From Orbicella franksi (Eukaryota): a DNA stretch of 64,000 nt. A program made the translations under genes and the position numbers. The notes under the pieces are model-generated. The model worked only from the letters and a program-made list of their open reading frames with translations, did no database searches and was not told where the DNA came from. Positions 13,825-32,684 of this stretch are shown piece after piece. Location: contig OZ116699.1 of assembly GCA_964199315.1 (NCBI GenBank), positions 20,522,001 through 20,586,000 on the forward strand. Reading direction: 5' to 3'. Position 1 is the first letter of the stretch, and every line of letters starts with the position of its first letter.

Positions 13825-16800
13825 TCAATTGTACTTTATTTCCCCTAACGTGTTTGACAGTTCCCTCCTTCTACGTATGTGGCTGTCAAGATGCTTGGCC
13901 TGTTCCATGAAGTCTGCCTCCCACACAAGTGTATAACCGAACTCGGAGTTAGGCCTCTTCCACTCGCAACCATGCCTCTCGATGAACCCCATACCCCCGG
14001 TCAACACTAATGAAGTAGACTTGGGCGATGTAGGACCCCGTGTGTCTGCCATACACCTCACTGCGGACACGTGACGGTGGATAAGGGTCAAGTGTTTTCG
14101 TGTTGAAGGATCTACGAGAACCACGTGACCAGTGCCCAGTCCTACCCAGAGAACTTTGTGCGACAGGAGAAGGCTGACAACGCGTGTTTCGCGTAAGTCA
14201 CCAGTGTAGCCGCTGTCCCTGAGAATTGTCAGACAGTCAACAGAGCCAAGGAATTTAGTTTTGGAGAAATCCCAGCACTCGATCACCGGACTATCACGAG
14301 TTGATATCCAAACAAACGTTGAGCCCACAGCGATGTTCAAAACAAGTCCCTTTGCTCTGTCCTCGACAAACCATCGACGCTCGATCTCAATTTCCGAGTT
14401 CTTCTTTATTCTGAGAACGACTATTTCGTTACCGCACCCGCAGAACAACCTCTTTCTGCCAACAGCCGTGCAAGCCAAGGGATGGGCTTGACAATCCTCA
14501 CAGGTGGTATCTCCAATGATCTTGCTGTGACACAGGTCAAAAAACTTGGGTTGAGCATCTTCTTTCTTGACACTGTGTGTGTGATAAACAGCTAACTGAC
14601 CGTTAGCGAGTCCTGCCAGTACAACGTCCACGTTCACGTCATTGGCTCCATCCTTGTAGTGCCTCAAACAAAGAACCGCGTCAGGAAGCTGAGGAAGGGA
14701 GAACTGGCACTTGTGATTCCACGCGTCAAAAACCCAGATTTTCCCAGACTGCGTGCCGGCCAACACGGTGTCGTCATTCACTGCTACGATACTCTTCACC
14801 CGTCTGTCTCGGATAAATGTGCCCGTGCAGCCCTGGGAAAACGTAAGAAACAATAACGTTTGCGTATTTTAATTACAATATGATCCAAATTGGATATAAG
14901 GCAACTTCGGAAAATTTATAGCTTCTACCCAAAATTGGCCCACATTGAGGTTGAATTTAATATAATACACAAGCAAATAGTTAACCGTGAAAAGGTCTGT
15001 TGATTGATCTATTCAAAGTCGTTTCTCTTTATTTTTCTCAGTAAAAAGCGAGCGAGTGTGGCTAGCGACCGACAACGAGCGCAGAATGAGGTAAAACGAA
15101 CAACCCTTGCATTCGTGTTCGTTCAATCTTCCGGCTGTGGTTTTTTATTTTGTCTGAACACTCGACGATGTTTAAGAAATAGGACGCCTGTGACAGACCA
15201 GTAGTTGATTGGCATAAGGTCGTCTAACTGCATTTGGTAAAAGTGCAGATTTTTGTTGTAGTGCTGATTTACAATAGTTATTTTGCAAAAGTGTTAAAAT
15301 TCGACAAATCCTTTGGTATGCGCGGAAGTGCTTCGACCTACCTCCACTCCATTGTCTGACAGGTCGATAATGGTGACCTGACCACTGAAGTTATCCGACT
15401 GTCCACTGCCCACCCACACCTCCACTTTAGGTGTGTCTTTTTCTTCAAAGTGACGAACGGTCATGCACTCTACTGTCTGTCCCTTGGACACGGCAATGTC
15501 ACGCTTCAAACAGATCAGCTCGGGGTCACACAAGCGCGAGTAGGCCTGTCACAAAGAGCAGGGAACGTCAATTGGAAGTCTTACGCCTTTGTAACAAATA
15601 AATTAAGTTCACTAATAAGATGCCAGTTTTAGCTTGCTAATACAAATGAGAAGTGAGTAAAGTAGGTCGGGTTTACAAGCATTGATCTTCTTCCCTGCCT
15701 TCAAAAGTGATCGAATATCATCAATTTACGAGCAGACAGATAAAATAAGGATCAACAGACCAAAAATATTTCCCAAAACTGTGAAACTGAAAAAACACTT
15801 CTCCCACTGAAAGAGAAGGCGTTATTAGTCAGCGGCACCAAAAGCAGATGTAGAAAGATGCGGAAATACAGCATGGACATGCATAGTCGGCGGCTTTTCA
15901 GATGACAAGATGAAAATAATTCTTTCATGCTAGTAATTGAATCCATTATTCACAGAATAAATTGAACCCCTTTACCCAGACCATGGAGAACTTTCTGATC
16001 GCAAAACAAGGAGCGAAACAACAGCTTTTCAAAATAAACAATAAGAACAATCTCTTCACGTTACCTGTTCAGCGGTAGCTCTTCTATGCGGCTGAGGCTC
16101 AAGAGCATGCGCAATAAGATCCGCCATGTCTGGCCAGGGAGGGCAGTCTGATGACGTGATAGGATCTAAGGCCCGTCCTTTCAACACGGCTGCATCCAGC
16201 TCGTGGCGGAAACGCAAGTCTTCAAACGGCTTGGTTCCTCCAGTCACGAGCTCGTACAGGAACATGCCAAACGAATACATATCGACTTCCATGTTGTAGG
16301 CGATGTCTCCGCGAGCAATTTCGGGTGCTCGATAGCCCGGCGTACCTTCAGTGGCGGTCAGACCGCAACGAGTGGCATACCGAGCGATGCCGTAATCAGA
16401 TATCTTGGCGTTGATCAAGTTTGTGAGAGAAAGGGAGAAGATAAGGATGTTGTGGGGTTTTAGATCACGGTACACGATCATGTGATGGTGTAAGAATGTG
16501 AGGCCTTCTGCAACCTGCAATAAAAAAATACGCAGAGCCCAGATTAAGACCACCAGTCGCCAAAAGACTAATAAGCAAGTGTTTTAGTTGAATAATTTCA
16601 CAACAAATAGCTTAACGTGTGTTCATAAAGACAGGCAGTATTACGAATCCATGCAACTTTGGCTCTTTCCATAGGAGGCCTTTTTCTGATCTCCGTATGC
16701 AGTCAGGTTAACACTTGACATTTTGGAAAACCCCTTACCAACATCAAAATAAACAAAGAGTTCGGTCTAATCAGAAAGGCTTTACATCAGAATAGCATCA

Positions 16801-19800
16801 CACAGATACGTCACGTTACTTAGCGACAATAATATCCCAGGTTCATGATATTACCTACAATGAGGATCCCACCGAAACTGATAACTCATTCGTCACTTTG
16901 GGTTACTGACTTACTGACTCCCAATTTTATACGTTGAACATTGTACGAAAGGCTCTCTTCTCACCTGTAAGGCAATTCTGTGCTGGATTCCTTTGCTGAG
17001 CGCCTGCCCTCTGTTTAGGAGCGTACTCAGTGATCCCAGTGGAGCCAGCTCCATTATAAGAGACCACGGCTTCACACAAACGCCCACCATGGTAATAACA
17101 CTCAGATGGCGCAGCTTCCGTAGGAACATGACTTCCTGTCGAAGTGACGTGTGAGGATTGCACTCATTTCCGGAATGAAACACCTATACAAAAACATCAC
17201 GGTCTAACATTAGCTAAAAGGTTGTTGTGAAGCCGAAAAGTCTAAATGGGGAGCAGGGACGACACAGTGGTGAAAGCACTCGCCTCGCACCCATGTTGCC
17301 CTGGTTCGATTCCTGCCTGGTGTCATATAAGCGTTGAGTTTGTTGTTGGTTTTCGCCTTGCTTCGAGGGTTTTTCACCGGTTCTCCGGTTTTCCTCCCTC
17401 CTAAAAACCAACATTTTCAAATTCCAATCCGATCAGGATAGAGGACCTGCGCGGAAACCAGCTGAGGCTGATGTGGCTTCCTCTCTAAAGATTATAATTT
17501 AAATAAATAAAATATTATAATTTACATTTTACCGCTTATAGTAACAAAGTTGAAAGCAGCACAGTCACAAACCTTGGCGGCAACAGACTTTCCATCATAG
17601 AGAGCCCTGTACACCGCGCCATAGCTGCCGTCTCCAAGCAGTGAGGTACGCGTTGTATCCAGCACCAGTTTACTCTCTTCAATTTTGAACTGTTCACCGA
17701 CATCTTCCAGGACCACATCAGGCGCTATCTGACGCAGCGACACCAGCAGTTTCGTGTTGGGGCACATGATGTATTCATTGTCACTCGCCCTAGCTATGGT
17801 GTCAAGGGCGAAAGTATGAGTGTCTTCTCCCTTGCACACAGGACAAACAGCCTGCTTCTTGACAAGAGGTAGCCCTTCCTGTGGATCCACTCCCCCTAAA
17901 CATAACAGATTCACACGTCAATTTTAGCATTTTCTTTTTAGTACTTAAGGCCCTTGTTTAGTGTCCCAATTAGTCCGCTCGGGCCAAATACATTTGACAC
18001 TTAAGTAAAGGTTCGTATCTTATCTTAATAGGCGAATCTTAGTTAATGTAATTGTTTACAATTTTTCCTCATGAACATAAGACTTTGCGCATAGAAGGCA
18101 TCACGCTAGAAACGAATAGACTACAAACATTTAAAGAGCTTCTGAAACTTAGCAACTGGTGACATGTTTAGCTTTTTGGGTGTAATATTCGAGGAGAAAT
18201 AGGTTTCAAAAAGTGCAAAATTTCTGGGAGGCAAAAGCGCTAATGAGCTCATACATTCTTTGTAAAATCTTGAGATTTTTAACCTGCGTAGCTTAAAAGT
18301 ATTCAATCATCGGGCTCAAATTCATTGGCATTGCAGAGGTTATCGCGCTGTTCCCTTTCAATATTCAGAACTAGTGTTTTTGTAGCTCCATCAGAAACTG
18401 TATCGCTTCTTCGTCCCCATACCGCCTTAAACTACATTGCATATGTGAGCTTTTGTCAGGGCTTCTTCCTGGAATAGTGCGCAGCTTATTGAGATGGATC
18501 ATAGTATATACAAGTAAGTGTAACACTTACACAAGTCTGGAAACCATTCCTCCAGCAGCGTGTCCAAATGATCAACCACGTGTGCGAGAATTCTTGCTCC
18601 ATGCTTTGTACTTGGCGTTGTAATCACCACAGTGTCCGCACAGGGATTGGTCAAACCGTGCGATATGACAAAGAATGCCTGCTCTGTCCAGTAGACGAAG
18701 ACACCTTCATTCCACTGTTGGACCTGTGGTTCACGCGGGCTCTCCAAGTGGACCCTGTGGTCCATATACAAGTCCACCACGAAAGTCTGGACTCTTGCAA
18801 TAAGGCGCGGCCAGAAACTGGGGGGTAGATAAGCCAGGTTGTACTCGCGGCTCACGAACACATTACGTCCCGGGTTTGGAATCTTGATTGAGGGTTGTTT
18901 ATTGCTGAGCAAAGATGGCAAAAGGTACTTGTCGTCTCTCAGTGGGAGAACAATGCAGTAGTGTTCAAGCAGCCTGTAAGGAAGAAAAACTTCACTAGTA
19001 TCAAGTTCAAACTGTCTTCTACATGAATTCTCTTTTGTCCTTCCATTGCACTGTAATTAAGGATATTTTTTATTTTATTTGTAAAGTAGTGTATCGGATG
19101 TCATGTAAACAGCTGTACAACATCTACAAGCTTGTAAAATTATCCACATTGTGTAACATCTGCAAGCGTGTAAAATGAGCAGTAACACTTATCGAGAGGT
19201 TTTCAATTGAGTGTCGTAAAACCAAACCCAAGCCAATTACGTACCAAGGTGGCTATTCAGCCAGTCTCAAACCGTAGCACAATCAAAACCAAAACCAAAG
19301 AAATTGCCTGTCGTGATTACTTTCGACACTCAATTGAGAACCTGTCCAACGTGCAAAGTTATTTTACTGCTAATTCGTTTCTCTAACTTCAACCTGGCAT
19401 AATTAAAGAAAGCAGAAATCGAATGCTTGCTAGTTAGTCTCACTGTGCTGTACAAAAACTGTATATAAAATGTCAATGCCTGATGAGATGCGTAACACAT
19501 TCGAACGTCCCAAAAACGGCGGGTAAGGACGATGCCAAACTGTCGAACAGAGGGATGCCTTGAAAGAGTGATCAAGACATTTTAAAACTCTACTTCTCGT
19601 AGATCAAACGAATCGTATAAAAGAAACCTTCTATCATGTTTTGACCCATGAAAGGTGTCGGGCAATGACTCTTCATCTATGTCCGTAAAATAATGCATCG
19701 TTTAAAAATAGAGAGAGGACGGGAAACAGTAAGAACGAAGGCAGTTATGTACCAGGGAACATGGAGCTTACTTTAGTATCTGTGGCATGAGATCGGGAGT

Positions 19801-22800
19801 CAGGTTAACTACACAACTTCCATCTCTGACCAATTTCTCGAGATCCTCCAAACCAAGGATGCCATTGGTGTTCTTACTGTCTTTTCTTGTCACCAAATGA
19901 GCAAACAAATGGAACACCCACAGGGGATCAACAAAAAGGAGATCGTCCAACTGGCAAGCTGGATGATCAACATGGATGAGGACTCCTGAAAGTGAGAAAA
20001 AAGATCAAGGAGTTTGGTTAAAGGACTACGCTTATTGCTGTTAAGTGCTTCTGAGAAACACTTTCCTAAGAGAGAAATTCCTGACTGCCGGCTAAGAGAG
20101 ACTAGAAGAGCAATGAGAATTCTAAGAACTTTGATTTGTATTTTGACGGTTGGCCTTCATTTTCGAGGCAGTCTTTTGACACTATGTGTACGTCGCTGGG
20201 ACATGAAATCCTTGCTGTTATGGAGTGAGAAATAACCGTTAGTGGAAAGTAGACTGTATATTATATAAGGGCAAACAGTGAGGGAACCTTACCTGCTTCA
20301 CTCATGAACCTAATGGCTTGTTCAAGCTCAGTATCATCCATGAGTAATTCATTGTCCTGAATGAGCTTTCGGATGCTGGCCATTTTCAAGATTCTTGGTG
20401 GTTCATGTCCTCTGGCGTGGACAAGATGCAAAATCAAGTCTTGTAGTCGCACAAAGTTCTGTGGGACTCTCGGGCCAATCAACGAATGGCCTTTGCACTT
20501 GCATTTTGGGATGAGCTGCATGATCCGATGACGGAGGGACTGCACTCCTGATGTTTCTTGAGTGCAGTCAAGTACCACGTGGCTCTTAACCTGGGGCAAG
20601 CCAGCACCAGCACACATGCTAAGGGCCCTTACCTTGATCTCATTTAGCAACTCGGTGACCTGATCCTTTGGCACCTTATCCTTATGAGTACCCACAAGCA
20701 TGACTGACGCCTCTGGTGCGCAGGCATGTATGTTGAGGAGCCAGGGCTTAAGAGAATCGATCTCACTGGTGCCTTTGCTCACATCATAGACTGCCAGAAA
20801 CAATGTCCTTGACGACAGGAGGCACTGATAAGCGCTGTACAAGTCATCACGTCCTTTGAGATCCCATGTGTTGATGACATAGTTCACGCTCTTGCGGTGG
20901 CACACTTTGCACTCAGCTTTTGTATCTCTGACACACCATTCTCTCGCCATTACATCATGGTGTGGTCCTGAAGCAATATCTTCCTGTAGCTGGTTCAACA
21001 ATGTCGTCTTTCCTCGTCCTGCCTGGCCAACAGCAACCAACTTCATACGATAATAAGGCACGGAATTCTTGAGCCTGGAGTGCAGGAATCCTATGAGTTC
21101 CTGAGCTCTGCTTTCTAGAATAGCTGAGTCCAGATCAAGCTTGAGGCCAACCAACTGCAGGTCCCACAGACTGGACAATCTTCCCATCTCATCCGGCAAG
21201 TGTGTGATACCAGTGTTGCGGCTCAAATTAAGGGAGGTCAGTGATTTTAATTCACCAATTCTACCCGGCACTGACTTCAGACAGTTGTCGCTTAAATTCA
21301 GCCTTTCGAGGTATGCCCACTTCTCTGCACCCTCCAAGGAGAGCTTTTTAATCTTGTTGTCAGCAAGAACGAGCTCTTTCAGCTGCTGTGTAGACCAGGA
21401 AATAGGAGGTGGGATGTCCTCCAGATTGTTACTTGAAAGATCCACAACTTTCACATTGGGGAGTTTGAGAAGAAATCGCGGGAATGAAAATTGTTTCTTT
21501 GAAGACTGCCCCCCAAGTTTATTCTTGTTTAACCGAACCGTTTTCAAATTTGTCAAGGACGGCGCCACAATCTCTGGCAACGTTGTGAAGTTGTTGTTTG
21601 AAGCCACAAGAGTTTCAAGAGAAAGACATTCTGAAACGAATTCACGAGGAATCTCCGAGAGCTGATTGTTTGACAAGTCGAGAGTTTTCAGTCGCCGTAG
21701 TTTCAAAGCAGAATCCGGCAGCTTTGTCATGTTATTGTCCACCACATACAGACTTGTTAATGCCGGAAATATATCTCCCAACCACTCAGGGAAACAGCTT
21801 TCCTCATTGTGTGACAAGTTCAAGTTCTCAAGCATAACATTGCTATCTCCAGGATGTCGAGGCCGGGCCATCTTTATCTTGTTGTGTGACAAGTTTAAGA
21901 CTTTCACCCCTGTCTGGATAAAGCAGTAAGGAAAACTCGAAAACTCGTTGTGACTCAGATTCACATATCGCAATTGCGGCATAGCATCACAAAGCAAAGA
22001 CGGAAATTTTGACAAGTGGTTATGACTCAGGTCAAGCTTCTCGACTTTAGCCAGATATGCAAGGAGAAGTGGAGAGGCTTCTGCAAGTGGCTCCAGGCTC
22101 AAGATGTTGTTGCTTGAAGCATCAATCAATCGCACTGTTGCCTTGGCAGAGATAGCTCTGATTGACTGCTTTCGCTTTCTTTTTGCTTCAAAGGGCTCGC
22201 AAGTCCTTGACCTTCTTCTGTCTGCACATTGGCCAAAGAATCTCCCACTGTCAAACTCATCACTGCATGTACTCAGGGACCGTACTCGGTAACCCTGCTG
22301 AAGGTTCCAGTTGTACACGTAGCTATTGTTGGGCATTTCAAACACACCAGGCACGTCTTCTTCGGGTTCTGTTATTCTGCCAATCTGTTCAGAGTCGGTA
22401 CATGGCAGTGGCGATACCTTTGCAGGATAAGAAGAGGCATCTAGACTGTTGACCGGAGGAATTATGTCACTGCGTGCACGCCTCTTCAGCATGGGCCGCC
22501 TACATTCTGGCAGGTACTCATCAAATGACCTTCTGTGAGCACTCCTGGGTAAAATAACGCAGTTCCTGTCTGAAAAGGGAGACACAACACGAGGATCATG
22601 TGAGCTGTAGGGGAAGGAAGCTCCACTGACACTACGTGCCCGCAATGCTGATTTTTCAGTTAATTCCGGAACATTCAAATCAATGTCAGAGTCAGAATCA
22701 GAATCATTGTCTGACTCATGCTCCAGGCCCACTAATATATCTATGCTAGAAGGGACACTTGCTTTGTCCGCCTGCCAGCCAGTTAAGCTACCATCCAAAG

Positions 22801-25800
22801 GCTTGTTTAAGATTGGTTCACTCCCTTTTCTTCTAAGGCGATTACTTAGAGTTGCTCTTAGTTGCGTTGTTCTCTCCGCATCGTCCAGAAATTCAGTCCA
22901 GCCAGTACTAAGGACTGGTGGAGAGTACTTACTACCAGCTAGAGAAGGCGACATCCACTGCGGGAGCAAATTACCCAAATTAAGGTTGCTGAATGCAATG
23001 ATACCAGCTTCTTTGTCATGGCCAAGATGCTGCAGAAGCAGTCCCACAATGTTGCTATAACCCATCTCAAGAGAAACCCTTAGTGAACTCTGAATGTCTG
23101 TGATTCCTTGAGTGAGAAGGAACTTGACCATTTCTTCCTTGCCGTTCTGGCAAGCACGGCAAAGTGGTGTGTTCTCGCCATGACCAGCATTGACATCTGC
23201 ACCCTTCTTTATCAGACAGTCAGCTCCTTTGAGAAGGCCTCCAGCACATGCCGACAGCAACATCTGTGTTTTCAGATTCCGTTCCCAGCCAAGATACCGA
23301 ATGCATTCGCTGGATAGAAACACAAGCTCTGGTTCTTCAGAGAAGTTTTCCAAAATGTAAAAAAGCCTTTCGTGTGCACAATTGTTCACCAAAATTGTAC
23401 TCTTCCCTTCATCTATTTGAGCAATGACCAGCATGGCTGCGCAGCCTTCTGCTTGAACACCTCTATCTTCCTTAGCCTCGCACATGGCCTGAATGACACT
23501 TGACACTGCCCTTTGACAATGATCATCTGACAACAAAGGTGCCAGCACCTGAATAAGAATGCATCCTTTCTGAAGTATTGCAGGTTCTGTTAGGTGCCTG
23601 CTCATCACATTAAAAATGGTATCCACACCACCATGATCTGAACTTTTAGAGACTAAAAGATCTGGAATTTCTTCAGCAGCAGCAAGCACACCTGATAAGT
23701 CGGGAAAGAGAAAGTACATTAATCACTGATGTAGGAAAATGTCTTGAAGATAGTAACAATATTCTTAGTTTCTAGTGCCTCAACACCTCACTGATGTGAT
23801 TAACCTCCCAAGCGTTTTCTTCAGAATACAAGTAATGAAGTGCCAAGAATGTGTCCTTGTTTGTTTGCTCCTGTAGTTGATGTTTTTTCGCCAATCATGT
23901 TTGTCGGTCTAGCTCAGATGATTATGATTATGTCAGGAAAACACGTGAGGCATTTCTGCTGAGGCAGCAATTTATAATTTGGTGAGTTTTGTTTTTTTTG
24001 TTTTCTCCTTTGAGTTAATTTACGGTTGGGGTTGGCTGGGGTAATCTACCACAAATACCAGGCAGGTACTACTTAAATTTTATGTATAAATTGTGCCCTT
24101 CCCTGGGATGAGAGCATTGTCACCAAGTTTTCCTTCAATTAGTAACAATTGTTAACTCCCTCAGTGGTTCAGAGGTAAAGTCTGCATACAAGCCAAGTGG
24201 CCCATCAGGCCAGAGCTTATCGCAGTGTCTGTACCATGAACTGACTAGGATTATTTCTGCTCCTCCCTGGATGGGATGCTAGTCTATTGCAGGGTTACCC
24301 ACAGCATTAAATCGCCGCTACCCATTTATACACCTGGCCAGAGAGAGGCACTGTGCAAGTTAAGGGTCTTGCTCAGGAACACAACACAATGTCCCTGACC
24401 AGGGCTCAAACCTGGACTGCTCGATCCAGAGACAAGTGCACTAACCATGAGGCCACGGCACCTCCACACTCCGCGGTTCATAATGAAAGTTCTTTTCTTT
24501 GTGCATGTTAAGGTGTACAAGAGTAGTTTTGAATTCACGAGCGAACATCAGTCATAGCTAATGAAACCATACTGGTCAAGAAAATTACAAAATTATTCTT
24601 TGACCACCAGAAATTTGAAAACATCGACCAATTCCAGTTGCAAACGAATTTTAGAAAAATGTTAAAAGCATTTAAACAATCCCCCTCCCCAACAAGCCAT
24701 AATATTTTTCGGGTAAGTACTTACCCAAAGCCTCTAATGAGATCTCTGCCAGGGATATCTGGTCTGGAAAATTGTCCATGGCATTCAAAATCATATAATG
24801 AACACCCTCAACAGCACTTTGATGCCAGACAAGCTCAACATCAGTTGCCAAGCAAGCAATTAATGCTATTGCTTCTTCTTGGACACCAACATGGTCTCCA
24901 AACCTGCAAAATCACAAGACTTCTCATTAACTTGTGAAAGCATTACCAGTTCATTTCTTTAGATGTACAATTGTTATACAATGAAGCTATAAGTCATTAC
25001 TCTTGCTAAGATTGCCATCAATTGCTTACCTTTGAGCACAATTGAAGATGAGCTCTAAAACACCACAGTTAACCAAGAGTTCTTTGTGACCACACCCAGA
25101 CAATGACAATCCTCGCAGTGCTCTGCAGCCCCACTGTTGAACTTCAGCTTTCCATTTGTGTTGCTTCATTGCATGGACAATGTTCAAGTGTAATCCTTTG
25201 GATATCAAAGACTGAAAAATACATGTAAATGTCATCATAACAGAAATAAACATCTGAGTGCCAAACAATACATGTAGTAACTAACTTGAAGATTTTTCTC
25301 TAATGAGACATTCATACAAGAAGCTAAACATTGAGGTTTAAAAATGAACCCTCCAGTTTCCATGTCTTTTGGCCTGCTAGAGTAGTTAAAAAATGCGGTG
25401 TGAGGCCTAAGGTATGGTGCATGCAGGAATATTTTTGAAGCATATGAAAGAAATGTAAGAGTTGCTCAAGACAATAACTGAGCGCAACTCTAGCATCTTG
25501 AGTGCTCTCCAAACTTTACACACCATAATTTGATAGTGCACAGCTAAAAGTAGCATGAAAATGGAAATGTACATCAAAACCAGCACAAGCATTAAGATAA
25601 TTTTTCTGACAAATCTATTCATTACGATGCATACTGAAATTGATTGTATGACATTGCTAAACTATGTTATAACTTACATTAACTAAATTGAAAATTATAC
25701 TTGTCAAAACAGGTAGATAAACAGGCGTTGCTGTTCTATAAAAACACTCTGCATTATTACCTTCCTTAGAGAGCTAGAGTTATTGACAATGGAAGCTAAG

Positions 25801-28800
25801 ACTCTACATGATGACTCGCATAGCTCTGGATCATCCATGTGTAACACCAAGGCAGCCATACTGCAGCTGTGTAAAGGAATGGTGCTATCACCAGGCTCAT
25901 CACCCATTTCATCCAACACATCAGGACAAACATCAATCAACTCTTGCAGGGCATGACAAGCAGCATGTAAGACTTCTGGGTTGTCATAATGGCTTGTCAT
26001 GGCAGTGAAAACCTCTCTCGTCCACATGCAATTCTGTATTTCTAAGAAAAACCATAAATATCTCAGTTGAGAGCTGTAATATGCCTCTTGTTTAGCTACT
26101 AACTTTAATCCTTGAAAAAGAACTATATAGTACATAATGTTCTTCTTTCTGAGGATTTGTAAACAGGGCATGATATGGCTTTGTGAATTGATTTACATGT
26201 AACTCCTTAATATTGCTTATGCCTAACAAGGACCACCATAACTTTTAAAAATGAATAAAGTTACTGTAATACATTGAGCTGACAATTTTGGATAATTGCA
26301 ACAGCGAAATTGTTGTGGGCATGTCAAATGCAGTACAAATAAAGCACAAATTCTGAACCTGCACTTGCCCCCTTCTTTAATAGCATTGCGCACAAGTGAT
26401 GTATATGATGGGCTTCTCATGTATGAAGGCTGTTTATGAATACCTCCATAGCAGAAAAAAATAGTATTATTGTACCCGATATTCAGATGTATCACCCACA
26501 ACAAAGCCAGCAAGCCAGCAAAGAAATACCATGAAGAAATACAGTAGATCCAATCCAATTCGTTTCCTTGCCTTGATGAAACTGGCCAGCTCTGTCTTCA
26601 CATATAAAAAACCTGAAAAACAGTTTTAGCCCGCGCTATCTATGTTACATGTAGCGCGCTGAACATATCAATATGCAGTTAAGGTCTGCTCACCGTCACA
26701 GATTTGCTTATGTGGTCAGATAAATGGCTCTATTAAAATCTAGGTCCTTAGAATTGCACAGTACATCTAAGTCTGCTATCAATGTGGAATTGTCTCAGGG
26801 ATAATACTAATGTCATCTTGTTCTATCGTATTCAAGGATTCTTGTCTGAGTTATGTGGGGGGTCTCTGGTGATGTAATATATTTTTAGAAACTGCGAGAC
26901 ACTATTCAATGCTGCATGTACATGTACTTGATAATTTTCCTTTGGCTCCACTCAGAACGCTTGCAGTTAAAACTGAACACTCTAAACAAAGTCTAGGTCC
27001 AGAAGAATCACATGTATTTTTGACTGGACTTTGATTCCACAATGTTGTATGCTACTTACCATGTTGCAGCTTTTTCTCAAGTGCCTCCGTGAGCAGGGCT
27101 AATGCAGTCAAGCCACTTTTCTGAATGTCAACGCAATCCTTAAAATTCTGTAACGCATGGAGAATTACAACTAGGACAATGCTCTGTTGAACTAAAATCT
27201 CCCTGTGAGACTCCAAGTCTGCCAGAAGTACCAGGAGTTGGCACCCAGCTGCTTGCACCCCAGGGCAATCACAATGTTTCTTCATTGCTTCTAATGCAAC
27301 AATAAATGTTCTCCCACGAACAAGAGTACAGCAGTTTTGTTCTGAAGATGCCAAAACACACATCAACTGTATACCTTGCTCTTGAATCTCTCCTTTTATA
27401 TAAAAAAAAGAAATAAAAAATACATGAAGATGAAGAATCTACATGCAATAAAAACTTAGAACAAGAAATACGACACCAGTGTCATAGACAAGAATGTAAC
27501 TGGAAAGCACTTGGACCAAACAGGCCCACACAGTCAGTGTTTATCCCAGATTTCATAGCATGAGCAACTAGGAGTCCATACCACACCACTTTCCAGCATT
27601 CCACTTCAGTGCATTTGAATAATAGTAGCAGGGCAAGATTGAGGTATATTTTTTCGTATGTTTGCTGTATTTTTGTCAACCCTAACCTTGACTTGGTGCC
27701 ATTGCATGTTGGAATGCAGTAAAGGTCTGTTGCAGGGTAGGAGAAACCCCAGATCTGATTTTTGCTCTTGGGCAAGTGAAAATAGAAGTTCAGCGGCACA
27801 AGTGAAATTAGCCTCAGTAGTCTTGTGAGTATGAACAAAATGTCAACTTGATAAATGATAATTTCCAGTCAGAAGACTGTAAGATCAGTTATGCATGGAC
27901 TAGTTAGGACTCCAAGCATTCTTTGTGTGAGTTTATCCTCTGATTTCCTTACTGGCTGCCACTATTTAAGTGGGGGCAAGGGAAAACTGAAATTTACTGG
28001 CCCAATTTCCATTTTGTTTTTCCTACCCTGTATTGTGTGTAGGAGATACACGGATTATAAGTAGAGACTACTCTTCCAGGTTTCTAGGGTTACTATGAAC
28101 TAATCCAAAAGCCTTTCTCAATGGCTTTACTCATCTGCCAAATACAAAGTCTAAGGGTCATTTTCCAAGGGTCTATTGAAAGAAAAAAGCAACACAGGGT
28201 ATAGAGAGGTCTAGTTGAGTCCAGAAAACAAAACATTTGATATGAACAGTAACGTGCTGACCGAAACGGAAATAGAAGTCAAATAAAACTCAGCATGCAC
28301 ATTGAGAGGATATGAAATCTACCCCTGAATTTATAGAGAGATAAACAGGGAATGGAGGAAAATGGCTTCTGACCAGCACGATAAATCATTACAGGGTTTT
28401 CAAATTGTAAAAAAGTTGCAGGAGGAAATCATAAAGTAGCCGGAACACTATCTCATTGTGATAACAGCAGCCTTGTGGAGGAGGGTGCTAGAGAGGAACA
28501 CCCCCCTTCTGCACAGGTAAATGGAGCGCTCACCCCGGAAAATTTTGAAAGTCAGGGTGCCTTGAAGTTTATTCCAGTGCATTTTTTGCACCCATAACTG
28601 ATTTTGTTGAAGGCCACTGTACACATATTGACGAGGGTTAGTGTGAAAAAACTTTGTGAAATTAGTTGCTTTCAGAGTTTTAGCATCTGATGTACTGGGT
28701 ATATGAGACCCTTCCATGCCTGGTGCATCGAACAAAAGCAGTGAGTAGATGTGTCAATTTTTTCTGTTTATTCTTTACACCCTAATACCAGTGAAGTTTA

Positions 28801-31800
28801 CAAAATGAATATAATTTCCTTGAATTCACTTTTAGAGAAAAACACTTAGTTTCAATCCCCCAAAATGCATCCGTCCCAAGATTGTTTTTGCTTTCATAAC
28901 AAAAGAGAGCTGCGACAAATCAATGGAATTGACGTAATACTTCCTTTTACAAACATGAATTATCACAACAAAGTCCGCGGTCTTGTTTCATTTCTACATC
29001 GATTTGTGGCAATTCACAGTTTCATCTGTCTGACATTCTCAACACTCACATTGTTGAAGGTTTTATTGCTAAGACTTCTTTCAATCTTTTGTTGAAAATA
29101 CATCTGGTGCAGTCAAGACCCTAACGAGTAACATTTCACAAGGAAGACTGCCTTAGCATTCACCATGCGAATGTGGCTACAGCCATGGATACTCTGGTCA
29201 ATTCAGCCTATGCGGATTGTTCTATCATTGCTTTCAGAACTGGAACAACATGTAATATTTGTTAACTCTAATTCTAAAATAATAGCTGCAATGTTTTTTT
29301 TCCCTCTGTTAGTGTTTATTTATTCCCTCAAAAATATCAGATTGCAATTACATTTAGTGAAACAGAATTGTGTATTACTGGTAATAAAATTTGGAATGCA
29401 AAAAGTACGCGGCGCAACTGCTTGAAGTAGCCAGTGATTTGTGCCAGGCGCCGGCTAAATGTGAAAACCCTGCATTATGGACAGAGCAGTAAAAGTGAAA
29501 ACATATGTCCTTCAGCAACAGACCATTTTCGTATTCTCGGTATTGGACTGGAACTAGCTTACAACTGAGGCTAATGTGGGGAGACTTTTCAAATGCAAAA
29601 GAAATTAACCTCTTCAACCCATTGACTCTCATGCTGCACGTGACCTGCCATGATGGGGTTGGCCTTTGTTCTACTTCTGACGTCATCACCTTTGACCAAA
29701 ATTGGCATCCTCTATACTCAAGTTCTGCAGGAGGAAACAATCTTTGCAATGATACCCAGATCAGAGTGACTGGCTGAATGGAGCCTGAAATATCTACGGA
29801 AATGCTTCAAAATTTGAGTGAAAAATCTGCAGCAAAATTTCCTGCGACTACACTTAGCTACCCTATGGTAAAAATTGCCTGTCTCAATGATGCTTTCTCA
29901 GAAAGTTTTGAACTGGAAGCTATCCCAGTGGAAGGTCAATCACTGGTGCAAAAAGATAAGAAAAGGAGAAAAAGGCAAGGCAAAAAAAGTTGAAAGAAAA
30001 CAGAAAGCCTAAAGACGTATTAAATGACTTTCTCAAAATTTCAGAATTTTGATTTCTGTGCATGCCCAAGCAAACATATCCTAAAACGCAGTGCTAGTGG
30101 AAAGAAAGGCATACTGTCTTGTTGCAAAAGACTTTTTGAGAAGATTGGAGCTAATTTGGCCCATACCCAGGCTGAAATTCTCTACAATGTCCAAAACATG
30201 CATTTTTGGCAAAAAGCTCCGGGAGTCAATGGGTTAATGAAATTTCCCCACATGAGCCTTCACTGTATGGTATTTCCATACCAACACAGAGAAAACAAAT
30301 ATGGCATATTGGTGAGAATGTTCACTATGCCACAAAGAAATTCCTTCAGTACACATACATCTTGATGGGTGCAATCAGGGTAAAGCTATAACTAAGCGTT
30401 ATTGTAATTTATTTGAGTGGCAATTTGAACTGCTGAATCTCAAATAAAGAAGTATTGGGAAGAAAATATGCCATTGAAGACTTTTGATTTGGGTAGAATT
30501 GTGACAAGAGTCTTCTTGGACAATAAGAAAGAGTTCAAAAGCAACTAAATGGAAAGCCATTAACAACCTATGGAAATTTTAGTAGATCAAGAACTTGATG
30601 AAAATCACTTGCAATCCTATGCTTAATGCACCATTATGCAGTTGATGATGCCCTTCTATTACCAAGCATTCACCTATCCAAATAGCACAAAAACCAATTC
30701 AAAAACACTTCCTGAAACTTGAACTTAAAAGCTAAATGGGAACACTTTCGTAAGTCTGTGGAGAAAATATTACTTCCATACTATATTCCAGATATGAACC
30801 CTAATTTTATTCAAAATGTGGTGATTTAAGCTAAGGGTGATTCAAAAGTCATCCAAAATCATTTTGATCACACTCTTAGGAAGTGCCCACAGTCACTGAT
30901 GGGTGCAGCTTTCATCTTGTATCATAATTATTATAGAATTTCACCATATGGGTAACATGATCTTCAATGCTACCAAAGGTCATGTACATTATGGCAAATG
31001 ATGAATTTAGTTGATAATACAGTGACTTGTCCACACTCTGAAGATGGATGTGAGGAAATTAAATTCATACAACCAAGCTTCTAAACAAAGTCAAGCCAAT
31101 AACATATCACACTCTCCAGGCGAAAGCAAAGCACATAATATGTGCGATGATAAAAAGTTATTTCTGCAATGTAAGGTCATGTCATACCTTTAAAAAGAAG
31201 TGAAAACTTCAAGTGATATGTAAGATATTATAAAAAATAAGTCAATTATGCATGTGGCTATTGTTATATAATGTAAGGAAAGACATGATGAGAGTAAAAA
31301 TCTAAAAATAAAAAAAATTAAACACATAAAGGAACTGATGTTGGGTAGGTTACACTGACTTAGTAACAAAATATCTTTTTCATGACCTTAGGCCCAGTCC
31401 AAACGCCGCTCCAAACACCGTTCCACTCATTTGCCGAACCAAACTTGATTAAGTTCGACTTTAGAGCGACATAAATCAAAGGCATACTGGTATTTTGTTG
31501 TCTTTATTTTTTGCGACGACTTTGAGCTTCATGCATGACTGGTCATGCCACTCAATTTTGAGCCAATCACGAGTCCTGCTATATGAAAAATAAATTGCAG
31601 TACTTTATGCATTAGGTTCGACACATGAGAACACCGTATGAATCAGCTGCTGCTCCAATGTTGCATAGTGCGACAGACCCTGCTGAATTTAATGTTGTTT
31701 GCCACACCAAACTTAACCTGCCAAACCAAAGTGATTCAAACGCCGCTCTTCTGCCGTACTTAACTCGTCAGTTAGGTTCGGCGCATGAATGGAGCAGCGT

Positions 31801-32684
31801 TTGGAACGGGCCTTATAGAAGGTAAAAAGCAAAGCAATTATTGCCTTGCTTTTTATTTACCTACAGTACATGTAAAATCATGTAAAAAGATATGTTAATA
31901 ATAAGTTAAAAACAAATCCATCTCTTACTTTTTGTTTGCCAAGAAAACAAGGAACATAAACACTTGCTGGCTAACCTGATTTAGCGTGTTTCTCCATGAT
32001 TTCTACCACCATACGATACTTTTTCCGTACATCTTTCACGTCCATGCTTATGAAGTCTGTCTGTGCAATCGGATCGTCTGAGAGTAACCGTGTTAAAGCT
32101 TCAAACGCGGGAATATAAAACTCCTCGTCCTCGCCAAAATGGCTCATTGCTGAAAGAACTGTATCGATAGCTCCATTATAGACAGCATCGCTTCTTGTCG
32201 TAGAAGAAGTGCACAGAGCAGACAATAATTTACAGCCTATAACTTGGCACATGTTGTCAGGGTGCCTTCCCATCATTTTCAAAATAAATCGTTGAGCCTG
32301 TTTCTTCTGCAGTTCGGATCTTACTTTTGGACTAAGCAACACAAGTCTGGAAAGCGCATAACAGCCGTCTAGTTGAATTTTGCGGTTGGTGTTAAAATCT
32401 TGCATTGCAGACATTATTGTCCTGTGAGCTTGCTCTCTTTCAAGAGGCTCTGAATCCACTTCGACTTCTTCGTCATCTAGAACCTCGGCTAGTAAACTCA
32501 TGCAGTTCTCCACTTGCGCCTCGTTAGAATTATTCTTGATATAACAGAGCAGTTTGAGTAATTCTTGTATATTTTCCTGGTTTAGTTCGCCTTCCAAGGC
32601 CATCGTAGGCTTTGCTCCGTTCAAACTTTCTAGCAGTCGGGAGCTTTGCTCACAAAAGGAGGTATCAGGGTAGATCAGGGCCAT
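13825..32684 (-). CDS. LRRK2: Leucine-rich repeat kinase 2-type ROCO protein (ARM-ANK-LRR-ROC-COR-kinase-WD40), complete, 13 exons, 2647 aa
   Basis: Coding exons 32684-31976, 27392-27060, 26041-25761, 25211-25030, 24903-24725, 23691-20293, 19985-19772, 18973-18531, 17895-17573, 17183-16965, 16514-16065, 15545-15342, 14832-13825; all GT-AG, phases join, total 7944 nt. N-terminal armadillo repeats; ROC VPYYRMKLVAVGQAGRGKTT; kinase LGDGSYGAVY, YRDLKPHN, DYGIA, GTPGYRAPE; WD40 LWVGLGTGHVVLVDPSTR; C-terminal helix HIRRRRELS. These match LRRK2 rather than LRRK1 (human sequence recalled). Confidence 0.93.
17248..17515 (+). mobile_element. tRNA-derived SINE (second family) in LRRK2 intron 9
   Basis: tRNA-like head with A-box-like CAGTGGTGA and B-box GGTTCGATTCC; body GGGTTTTTCACCGGTTCTCCGGTTTTCCTCCC; AT-rich tail. 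Confidence 0.7.
19198..19342. mobile_element. Short MITE in LRRK2 intron 7
   Basis: Inverted ends GGTTTTCAATTGAGTGTCGTAA / TTTCGACACTCAATTGAGAACC. Confidence 0.7.
24173..24470 (-). mobile_element. tRNA-derived SINE, family shared with 40702-41009 (LRRK2 intron 5)
   Basis: Minus-strand head CCTCATGGTTAGTG..GGTTTGAGCCC, conserved core GGTAACCCTGCAATAGACTAGCATCCCATCCAGGG, tail GCAGACTTTACC; colinear with the 40.7-kb copy. Confidence 0.85.
29618..30233. mobile_element. piggyBac-like MITE in LRRK2 intron 1
   Basis: Ends CCCATTGACTC / GAGTCAATGGG, flanked by TCAA (29614-29617) and TTAA (30234-30237), consistent with a TTAA TSD with one change. Confidence 0.7.
31391..31812. mobile_element. PIF/Harbinger (Tourist-like) MITE in LRRK2 intron 1
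   Basis: Ends GGCCCAGTCCAAACGCCGCTCC / GGAGCAGCGTTTGGAACGGGCC with a TTA duplication on both sides (31388-31390, 31813-31815). Confidence 0.8.

Follow-up and report, generated by a model that had tools for sequence, protein, structure and literature searches.

The position of human LRRK2 R1441 carries a cysteine, probably an ancient hexacorallian residue, in the LRRK2 orthologue of the coral Orbicella franksi

The occurrence of a human pathogenic allele as the wild-type residue of another species is a well-known phenomenon. For the gene considered here, the closest described systems are human LRRK2 (PARK8), its paralogue LRRK1, and the LRRK2 of the sea anemone Nematostella vectensis (nvLRRK2). 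In human LRRK2, R1441 caps W1791 (PMC8863276), and the proposed effect of the Parkinson's disease (PD) mutations affecting R1441, N1437, and Y1699 is an uncoupling of the ROC domain from COR-B that frees the kinase (PMC8863276). The equivalent of R1441 in human LRRK1 is K746, and loss of the basic residue is activating in both human paralogues, as R1441G in LRRK2 and as K746G in LRRK1 (PMC7886321). As to the cnidarian orthologue, passages of the Nematostella paper state that nvLRRK2 does not conserve the PD residues of the ROC domain (PMC11308222); to the extent of these passages, which name neither the residue nor a cysteine, cnidarian non-conservation of the ROC PD residues is already in print. 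A literature search on LRRK2 in combination with "compensated pathogenic" yielded nothing relevant.

The window, i.e., the whole stretch of 64,000 nucleotides of the O. franksi genome analysed here (assembly GCA_964199315.1, contig OZ116699.1, positions 20,522,001 to 20,586,000), contains on its minus strand a complete, intact, and ordinary LRRK2 orthologue of approximately 13 exons and 2630 codons (13858-32678; all coordinates are window positions). The gene was delineated by a tblastn search with P0227, a coral-type protein of 2633 aa, residues 5-2629 of which are collinear with positions 32678 to 13858, and by several pieces of the ARM_LRRK2 domain upstream of the large exon. The order of the Pfam domains, ARM_LRRK2, ANK_LRRK2, LRR, Roc, COR-A, COR-B, Pkinase, and Beta-prop_LRRK2, is of the LRRK2 type, and the ARM-ANK-LRR-ROC-COR-kinase-WD40 order is shared with human LRRK2, as are the flanks of the ROC helix. 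Unlike the human gene, the coral gene is compact (approximately 19 kb, 13 exons) with one exon of 3.4 kb, and the identity of the two ROC domains is only about 36-40%.

The ROC-COR part of the gene is split over three exons. The 3.4-kb exon (20292-23692) encodes the end of ARM, ANK, LRR, ROC, and the start of COR-A, as matched by Pfam ANK_LRRK2, LRR, and Roc, and RNA contigs of three runs end or are joined at 23692 and 20292. It comprises 1133 codons, and the same long open frame was found in 34 related assemblies. Within it, the ROC GTPase domain (20678-21043; Pfam PF08477, E 2.9e-13) corresponds to residues 893-1014 of a 1152-aa open frame (20261-23719). Next come the COR-A exon (19771-19984; Pfam COR-A), bordered by introns 19985-20291 and 18973-19770, both GT..AG on the minus strand, and the COR-B exon (18530-18972; Pfam COR-B), which phmmer aligned to human LRRK2 1652-1795. 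Contigs of 4.5-7.9 kb from RNA runs cross both introns at these GT..AG joints. As the RNA contigs are spliced at 19984/20292 and 18972/19771, the limits of the three exons are set and the gene is expressed as a spliced mRNA. The kinase exons (16044-17183; Pfam Pkinase, E 1.7e-30), located from the translation and by tblastn with P0227, contain the intact motifs YRDLKPHN and DYGIA, the latter retaining the equivalents of G2019 and I2020; the ROC motifs GRGKTT (P-loop), DLKG, and THKD are intact as well. The C-terminal LRRK2-type WD40 beta-propeller is encoded at 13858-15548 (Pfam PF23748, E 1.1e-65 and 4.6e-13; tblastn).

An earlier note on this DNA had named the gene as LRRK2, and the assignment is borne out by the domain order and by the ROC and COR-B scores. 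In a phmmer search against all PDB sequences, the ROC domain matched human LRRK2 with E-values of 5e-40 to 3e-38 versus 2e-19 for LRRK1, and for COR-B the corresponding E-values were 1.6e-22 versus 1.1e-06. The nearest named proteins are all annotated as "LRRK2(-like)". Length-matched searches returned no named full-length LRRK2 protein of a stony coral; they recovered P0227 and P0270, both coral-type and full-length, as well as the Nematostella protein. The LRRK2-type locus is present in one copy in the 497-Mb genome, together with three further ROC-bearing (ROCO/LRRK1-like) loci, L002-L004 (contigs C1 and C3). Confusion of paralogues was rejected, as the LRRK2-type locus is single and the three other loci are distinct from it and all encode Arg where LRRK2 has R1441. 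In L002, the codon immediately preceding this Arg is the exact site of an intron.

Several other features were found in the window. The intron 18973-19770 contains a short, very high-copy repeat (19124-19320), probably an interspersed element of small size or one of MITE type. In each of the four runs aligned to the window, the summed contig depth climbs there from tens to values of 2000-10000, loose ends are numerous, and internal deletions vary. A 494-codon open frame on the plus strand (4203-5687), which encodes a reverse transcriptase (Pfam RVT_1, E 1.8e-33), is a retroelement copy located approximately 8 kb downstream of LRRK2. Between it and LRRK2, also on the plus strand, lies an uninterrupted 312-codon open frame (9141-10079) that covers the Rtf2 RING-finger family model in full (Pfam PF04641, E 1.4e-92) and is either an intronless Rtf2 gene or a retrocopy.

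The codon of interest is TGC, encoding Cys (20722-20720, minus strand), and was read directly in the context ATA CAT GCC TGC GCA CCA GAG (I H A C A P E, preceded by AAC for Asn), within the 1152-aa frame, which also contains the peptide quoted in the earlier note. It is situated in the ROC helix facing COR-B. The gapless alignment with human LRRK2 given in the note, placing this Cys on R1441, is correct: in phmmer comparisons with PDB chains, coral query residues 107-206 correspond to human 1411-1507 without gaps around the site, the coral ROC region as a whole aligns to human 1313-1535 (E 5e-40), and R1441 was assigned by counting along the printed alignment. The top-scoring chain is that of the human R1441C mutant (9oya_B), reading "nikaCass" versus "nikaRass" in the other LRRK2 chains shown.

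When 1.84 billion cluster representatives were searched exhaustively with HMMER, this provided 147 ROC homologues that could be aligned at this column. Arg is found in 100 of these representatives, the others having Cys (12), Gln (9), Ser (6), Ala (5), His (5), Leu (4), Asn (2), Val (2), or Tyr (2). Among LRRK2 proteins, Arg is present in molluscs, hemichordates, amphioxus, Lingula, Owenia, Tubulanus, lamprey, other sharks than those named below, chimaera, coelacanth, and tetrapods. Leu is found in all sampled echinoderms (Acanthaster, Patiria, Asterias, Amphiura, Lytechinus, Diadema, Antedon, Anneissia, and Holothuria; rows P0002, P0193-P0199, P0203, and P0005), and Val in Hydractinia and in all four sampled teleosts (Megalops, Alosa, Boleophthalmus, and Periophthalmus; rows P0028, P0249, P0251, and P0274). 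Clytia has Ser, Macrostomum Gln, and Capitella and the skate Rhinoraja longicauda (P0233) His, while Cys occurs in the carpet sharks Stegostoma tigrinum (P0228) and Chiloscyllium plagiosum (P0232). The site is lineage-fixed in several non-basic states, such as echinoderm Leu and teleost Val. LRRK1-like proteins of Montipora and Dendronephthya have Arg. The RocCOR regions of the zebra shark (Cys) and the bullhead shark (Arg) are 91% identical, with 47 residue differences, and their local helix and COR-B tip are identical. The earlier note had treated Cys at this site as unusual; non-Arg residues proved commonplace in LRRK2 and other ROCO proteins, vertebrate LRRK2 included, which is the very observation that it had named as telling against its claim.

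A word-indexed search with the large exon retrieved its counterparts in other assemblies as 34 clusters, with identities of 55-97%. Clusters that are at least 87% identical all have Cys; those at 72-79% have Cys, Tyr, Phe, or His; and those at 55-63% have Cys. A maximum-likelihood tree of the orthologue rows, rooted with sea-star and amphioxus proteins, groups the window with rows that have Cys without exception (17/17), and the outlying cnidarian rows (P0188, P0004, P0189, P0187, and P0177) all have Cys too. The sister coral clade of 12 rows has Tyr in seven, His in three, and Phe in two. Over the whole tree, the column requires a minimum of five changes, and by this fewest-change count Cys is ancestral, the sister clade having departed from it. 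The N. vectensis LRRK2 (isoform X2), whose identity with the coral proteins across the large exon is approximately 49-51%, has the same Cys in the local context ...NIYACAPDAP...; therefore, the Cys state predates the split of anemones and stony corals. On these grounds Cys is reconstructed as ancestral for sea anemones and stony corals as a whole. The comparison of coral and anemone LRRK2 ROC domains that the earlier note proposed shows Cys in the clade of the window and in Nematostella, and Tyr, Phe, or His in the sister clade.

The codons found at the site are all single steps apart: the window has TGC, the basal row P0177 has TGT, and the others are TTT, TAT, and CAT. Since the basal coral-like orthologue has TGT and the lineages with Tyr, Phe, and His have TAT, TTT, and CAT, the older codon probably ended in T, and the TGC of the window is then likely to be a later synonymous change. 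A recent CGC-to-TGC transition at a CpG, the change that the earlier note had suggested by analogy with the human mutation, was rejected in view of these codons of related lineages, and any loss of Arg predates the coral-anemone split. The CpG depletion of the gene body, noted in the same context, is real: the observed/expected ratio is 0.47 in the exon and 0.56 in the gene versus 0.73 in the window.

The remainder of the ROC:COR-B contact is retained in the coral protein. N1437 is conserved in ROC, according to the PDB alignment, and in the COR-B exon the phmmer alignment showed the Tyr equivalent to Y1699 (18829-18831, minus strand) and the Trp equivalent to W1791 (18544-18546, minus strand) in the helix tip EEWFP (human 1789-1793). 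Thus N1437, Y1699, E1789, E1790, W1791, and the kinase motif DYGIA are common to the human and coral proteins, and at the interface the Arg alone is missing. As the partner of R1441 is a backbone atom, covariation of a side chain with it is not expected. A scan of ROC-COR columns over 50 sequences from 19 lineages (11 with Arg versus 8 without), which is of low power, revealed no column consistently co-varying with the loss of Arg, the best other column being a conservative E/D change. A universal compensating partner is accordingly not supported, as nothing convincing emerged at the level of these lineages, and the neighbouring ROC changes which the earlier note had supposed to compensate for the substitution were identified neither in ROC nor in COR-B by this low-power scan, which leaves room for lineage-specific compensation.

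Most probably, the Cys has been fixed since ancient times as the normal residue of LRRK2 in hexacorallians, and is neither a new mutation nor a polymorphism, and we infer that the interface does not depend on Arg. Residues that are small or aromatic and carry no charge (Cys, or Tyr, Phe, and His in the sister clade) would pack against the COR-B tip; the interface would be held by other contacts in place of the Arg cap; and these contacts would set the resting coupling between GTPase and kinase. If so, Cys would represent the wild-type behaviour of coral LRRK2 and not a disease-like state.

Two other explanations of the Cys deserve little credence. One is a shifted register, with Cys away from the structural position of R1441; the block between KPWL.NI and V.LVGTH.D is gapless in the PDB alignment and in all 147 homologues, and its flanks (PWL..NI and V.LVGTH.D) are conserved, so that, judged by sequence, the chance of such a shift is very slight. 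Equally slight is the chance that the Cys arose by an error of sequencing or assembly, or represents a polymorphism within the species. Public runs that contain the stretch number 20; they come from 10 studies and bear the labels coral or coral metagenome. For four runs, each from a separate study (three RNA and one probably DNA), contigs were aligned over 18400-23800. The codon is covered in all four (pieces 20212-21229, 20292-21844, 20292-22232, and 20292-23692), with zero differences at 20720-20722. The runs are distinguishable by their SNP patterns, since they differ from the window and from each other nearby (20588, 20894, 21053, 21248, 21374, and others), yet all of them agree with the window at the codon. 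Besides, Cys is present in every related cluster at 87-97% identity and in Nematostella. Error and polymorphism were rejected on these data. The C/T polymorphism suspected in the earlier note was absent from the contigs of the four runs, where rare variants are dropped and an Arg allele of low frequency could escape; of the two alternatives it offered, the fixed substitution stands and the segregating variant does not. At three positions, 20588 (A>G), 22778 (G>C), and 19193 (C>A), the letter of the window is matched by none of the four runs, and therefore the window assembly has a private allele or an error there; at 20588 the codon changes from GTT to GTC without altering the amino acid.

A more serious alternative is that hexacorallian LRRK2 is naturally R1441C-like, with slow GTP hydrolysis and a loosened ROC:COR-B contact, either compensated elsewhere or operating at a different set-point, or, in a variant of the same idea, with the Cys serving as a redox switch. 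A basic residue at this site is clearly functional in many contexts, since its removal activates both human paralogues, which it restrains, and since the three other ROCO genes of the coral keep Arg. Human LRRK1 has a basic residue other than Arg and the coral LRRK1-like/ROCO paralogues have Arg; only coral LRRK2 has lost the basic residue. The loss is thus specific to LRRK2, and Cys has been retained for very long in many lineages. Absence of Arg could therefore represent a truly different regulatory set-point. However, Tyr, Phe, or His freely took the place of Cys in one coral clade, and this speaks against an essential thiol; the eight independent non-Arg lineages share no co-varying ROC-COR column; and the carpet-shark Cys, in a RocCOR so close to that of an Arg-bearing shark, suggests simple tolerance. 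On balance, we consider the R1441C-like state improbable. A related proposal, by which hexacorallian and, independently, carpet-shark and skate LRRK2 would be natural R1441C/H-state enzymes regulated through lineage-specific suppressor contacts between ROC and COR-B, is speculative and rather doubtful; if it were true, the differences between Cys-bearing proteins and their Arg-bearing relatives, such as the 47 RocCOR residues of the zebra and bullhead sharks, would contain natural suppressors of a Parkinson mutation.

The preferred reading, of a normal and ancient coral Cys at an interface that would work without the Arg cap, sets the gene among compensated or tolerated pathogenic deviations: the human pathogenic Cys, and also His (in the skate and some corals), is normal in other orthologues, and since the low-power scan showed no co-varying site, plain tolerance is equally possible. 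The human allele R1441C, a dominant gain-of-function in human, is the wild-type residue of the coral, present in the window, in all 17 clusters of its clade, in the outlying cnidarians, and in Nematostella, and is reconstructed as ancestral across the clade. What is new here, beyond the published statement on nvLRRK2, is the clade-wide picture, with Cys as the ancestral state of hexacorals, along with Cys or His in elasmobranchs; it is a useful footnote and no surprise. Human position 1441 is not a universally constrained Arg, as Cys is normal in corals, anemones, and some sharks, and His, Val, or Leu in skates, teleosts, and echinoderms. Caution is needed when ROC mutations are modelled in Nematostella, an animal already in use as an LRRK2 model, because the "mutant" residue is its wild type. 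Finally, natural Cys/Arg pairs among close relatives could provide a cheap search space for suppressors.
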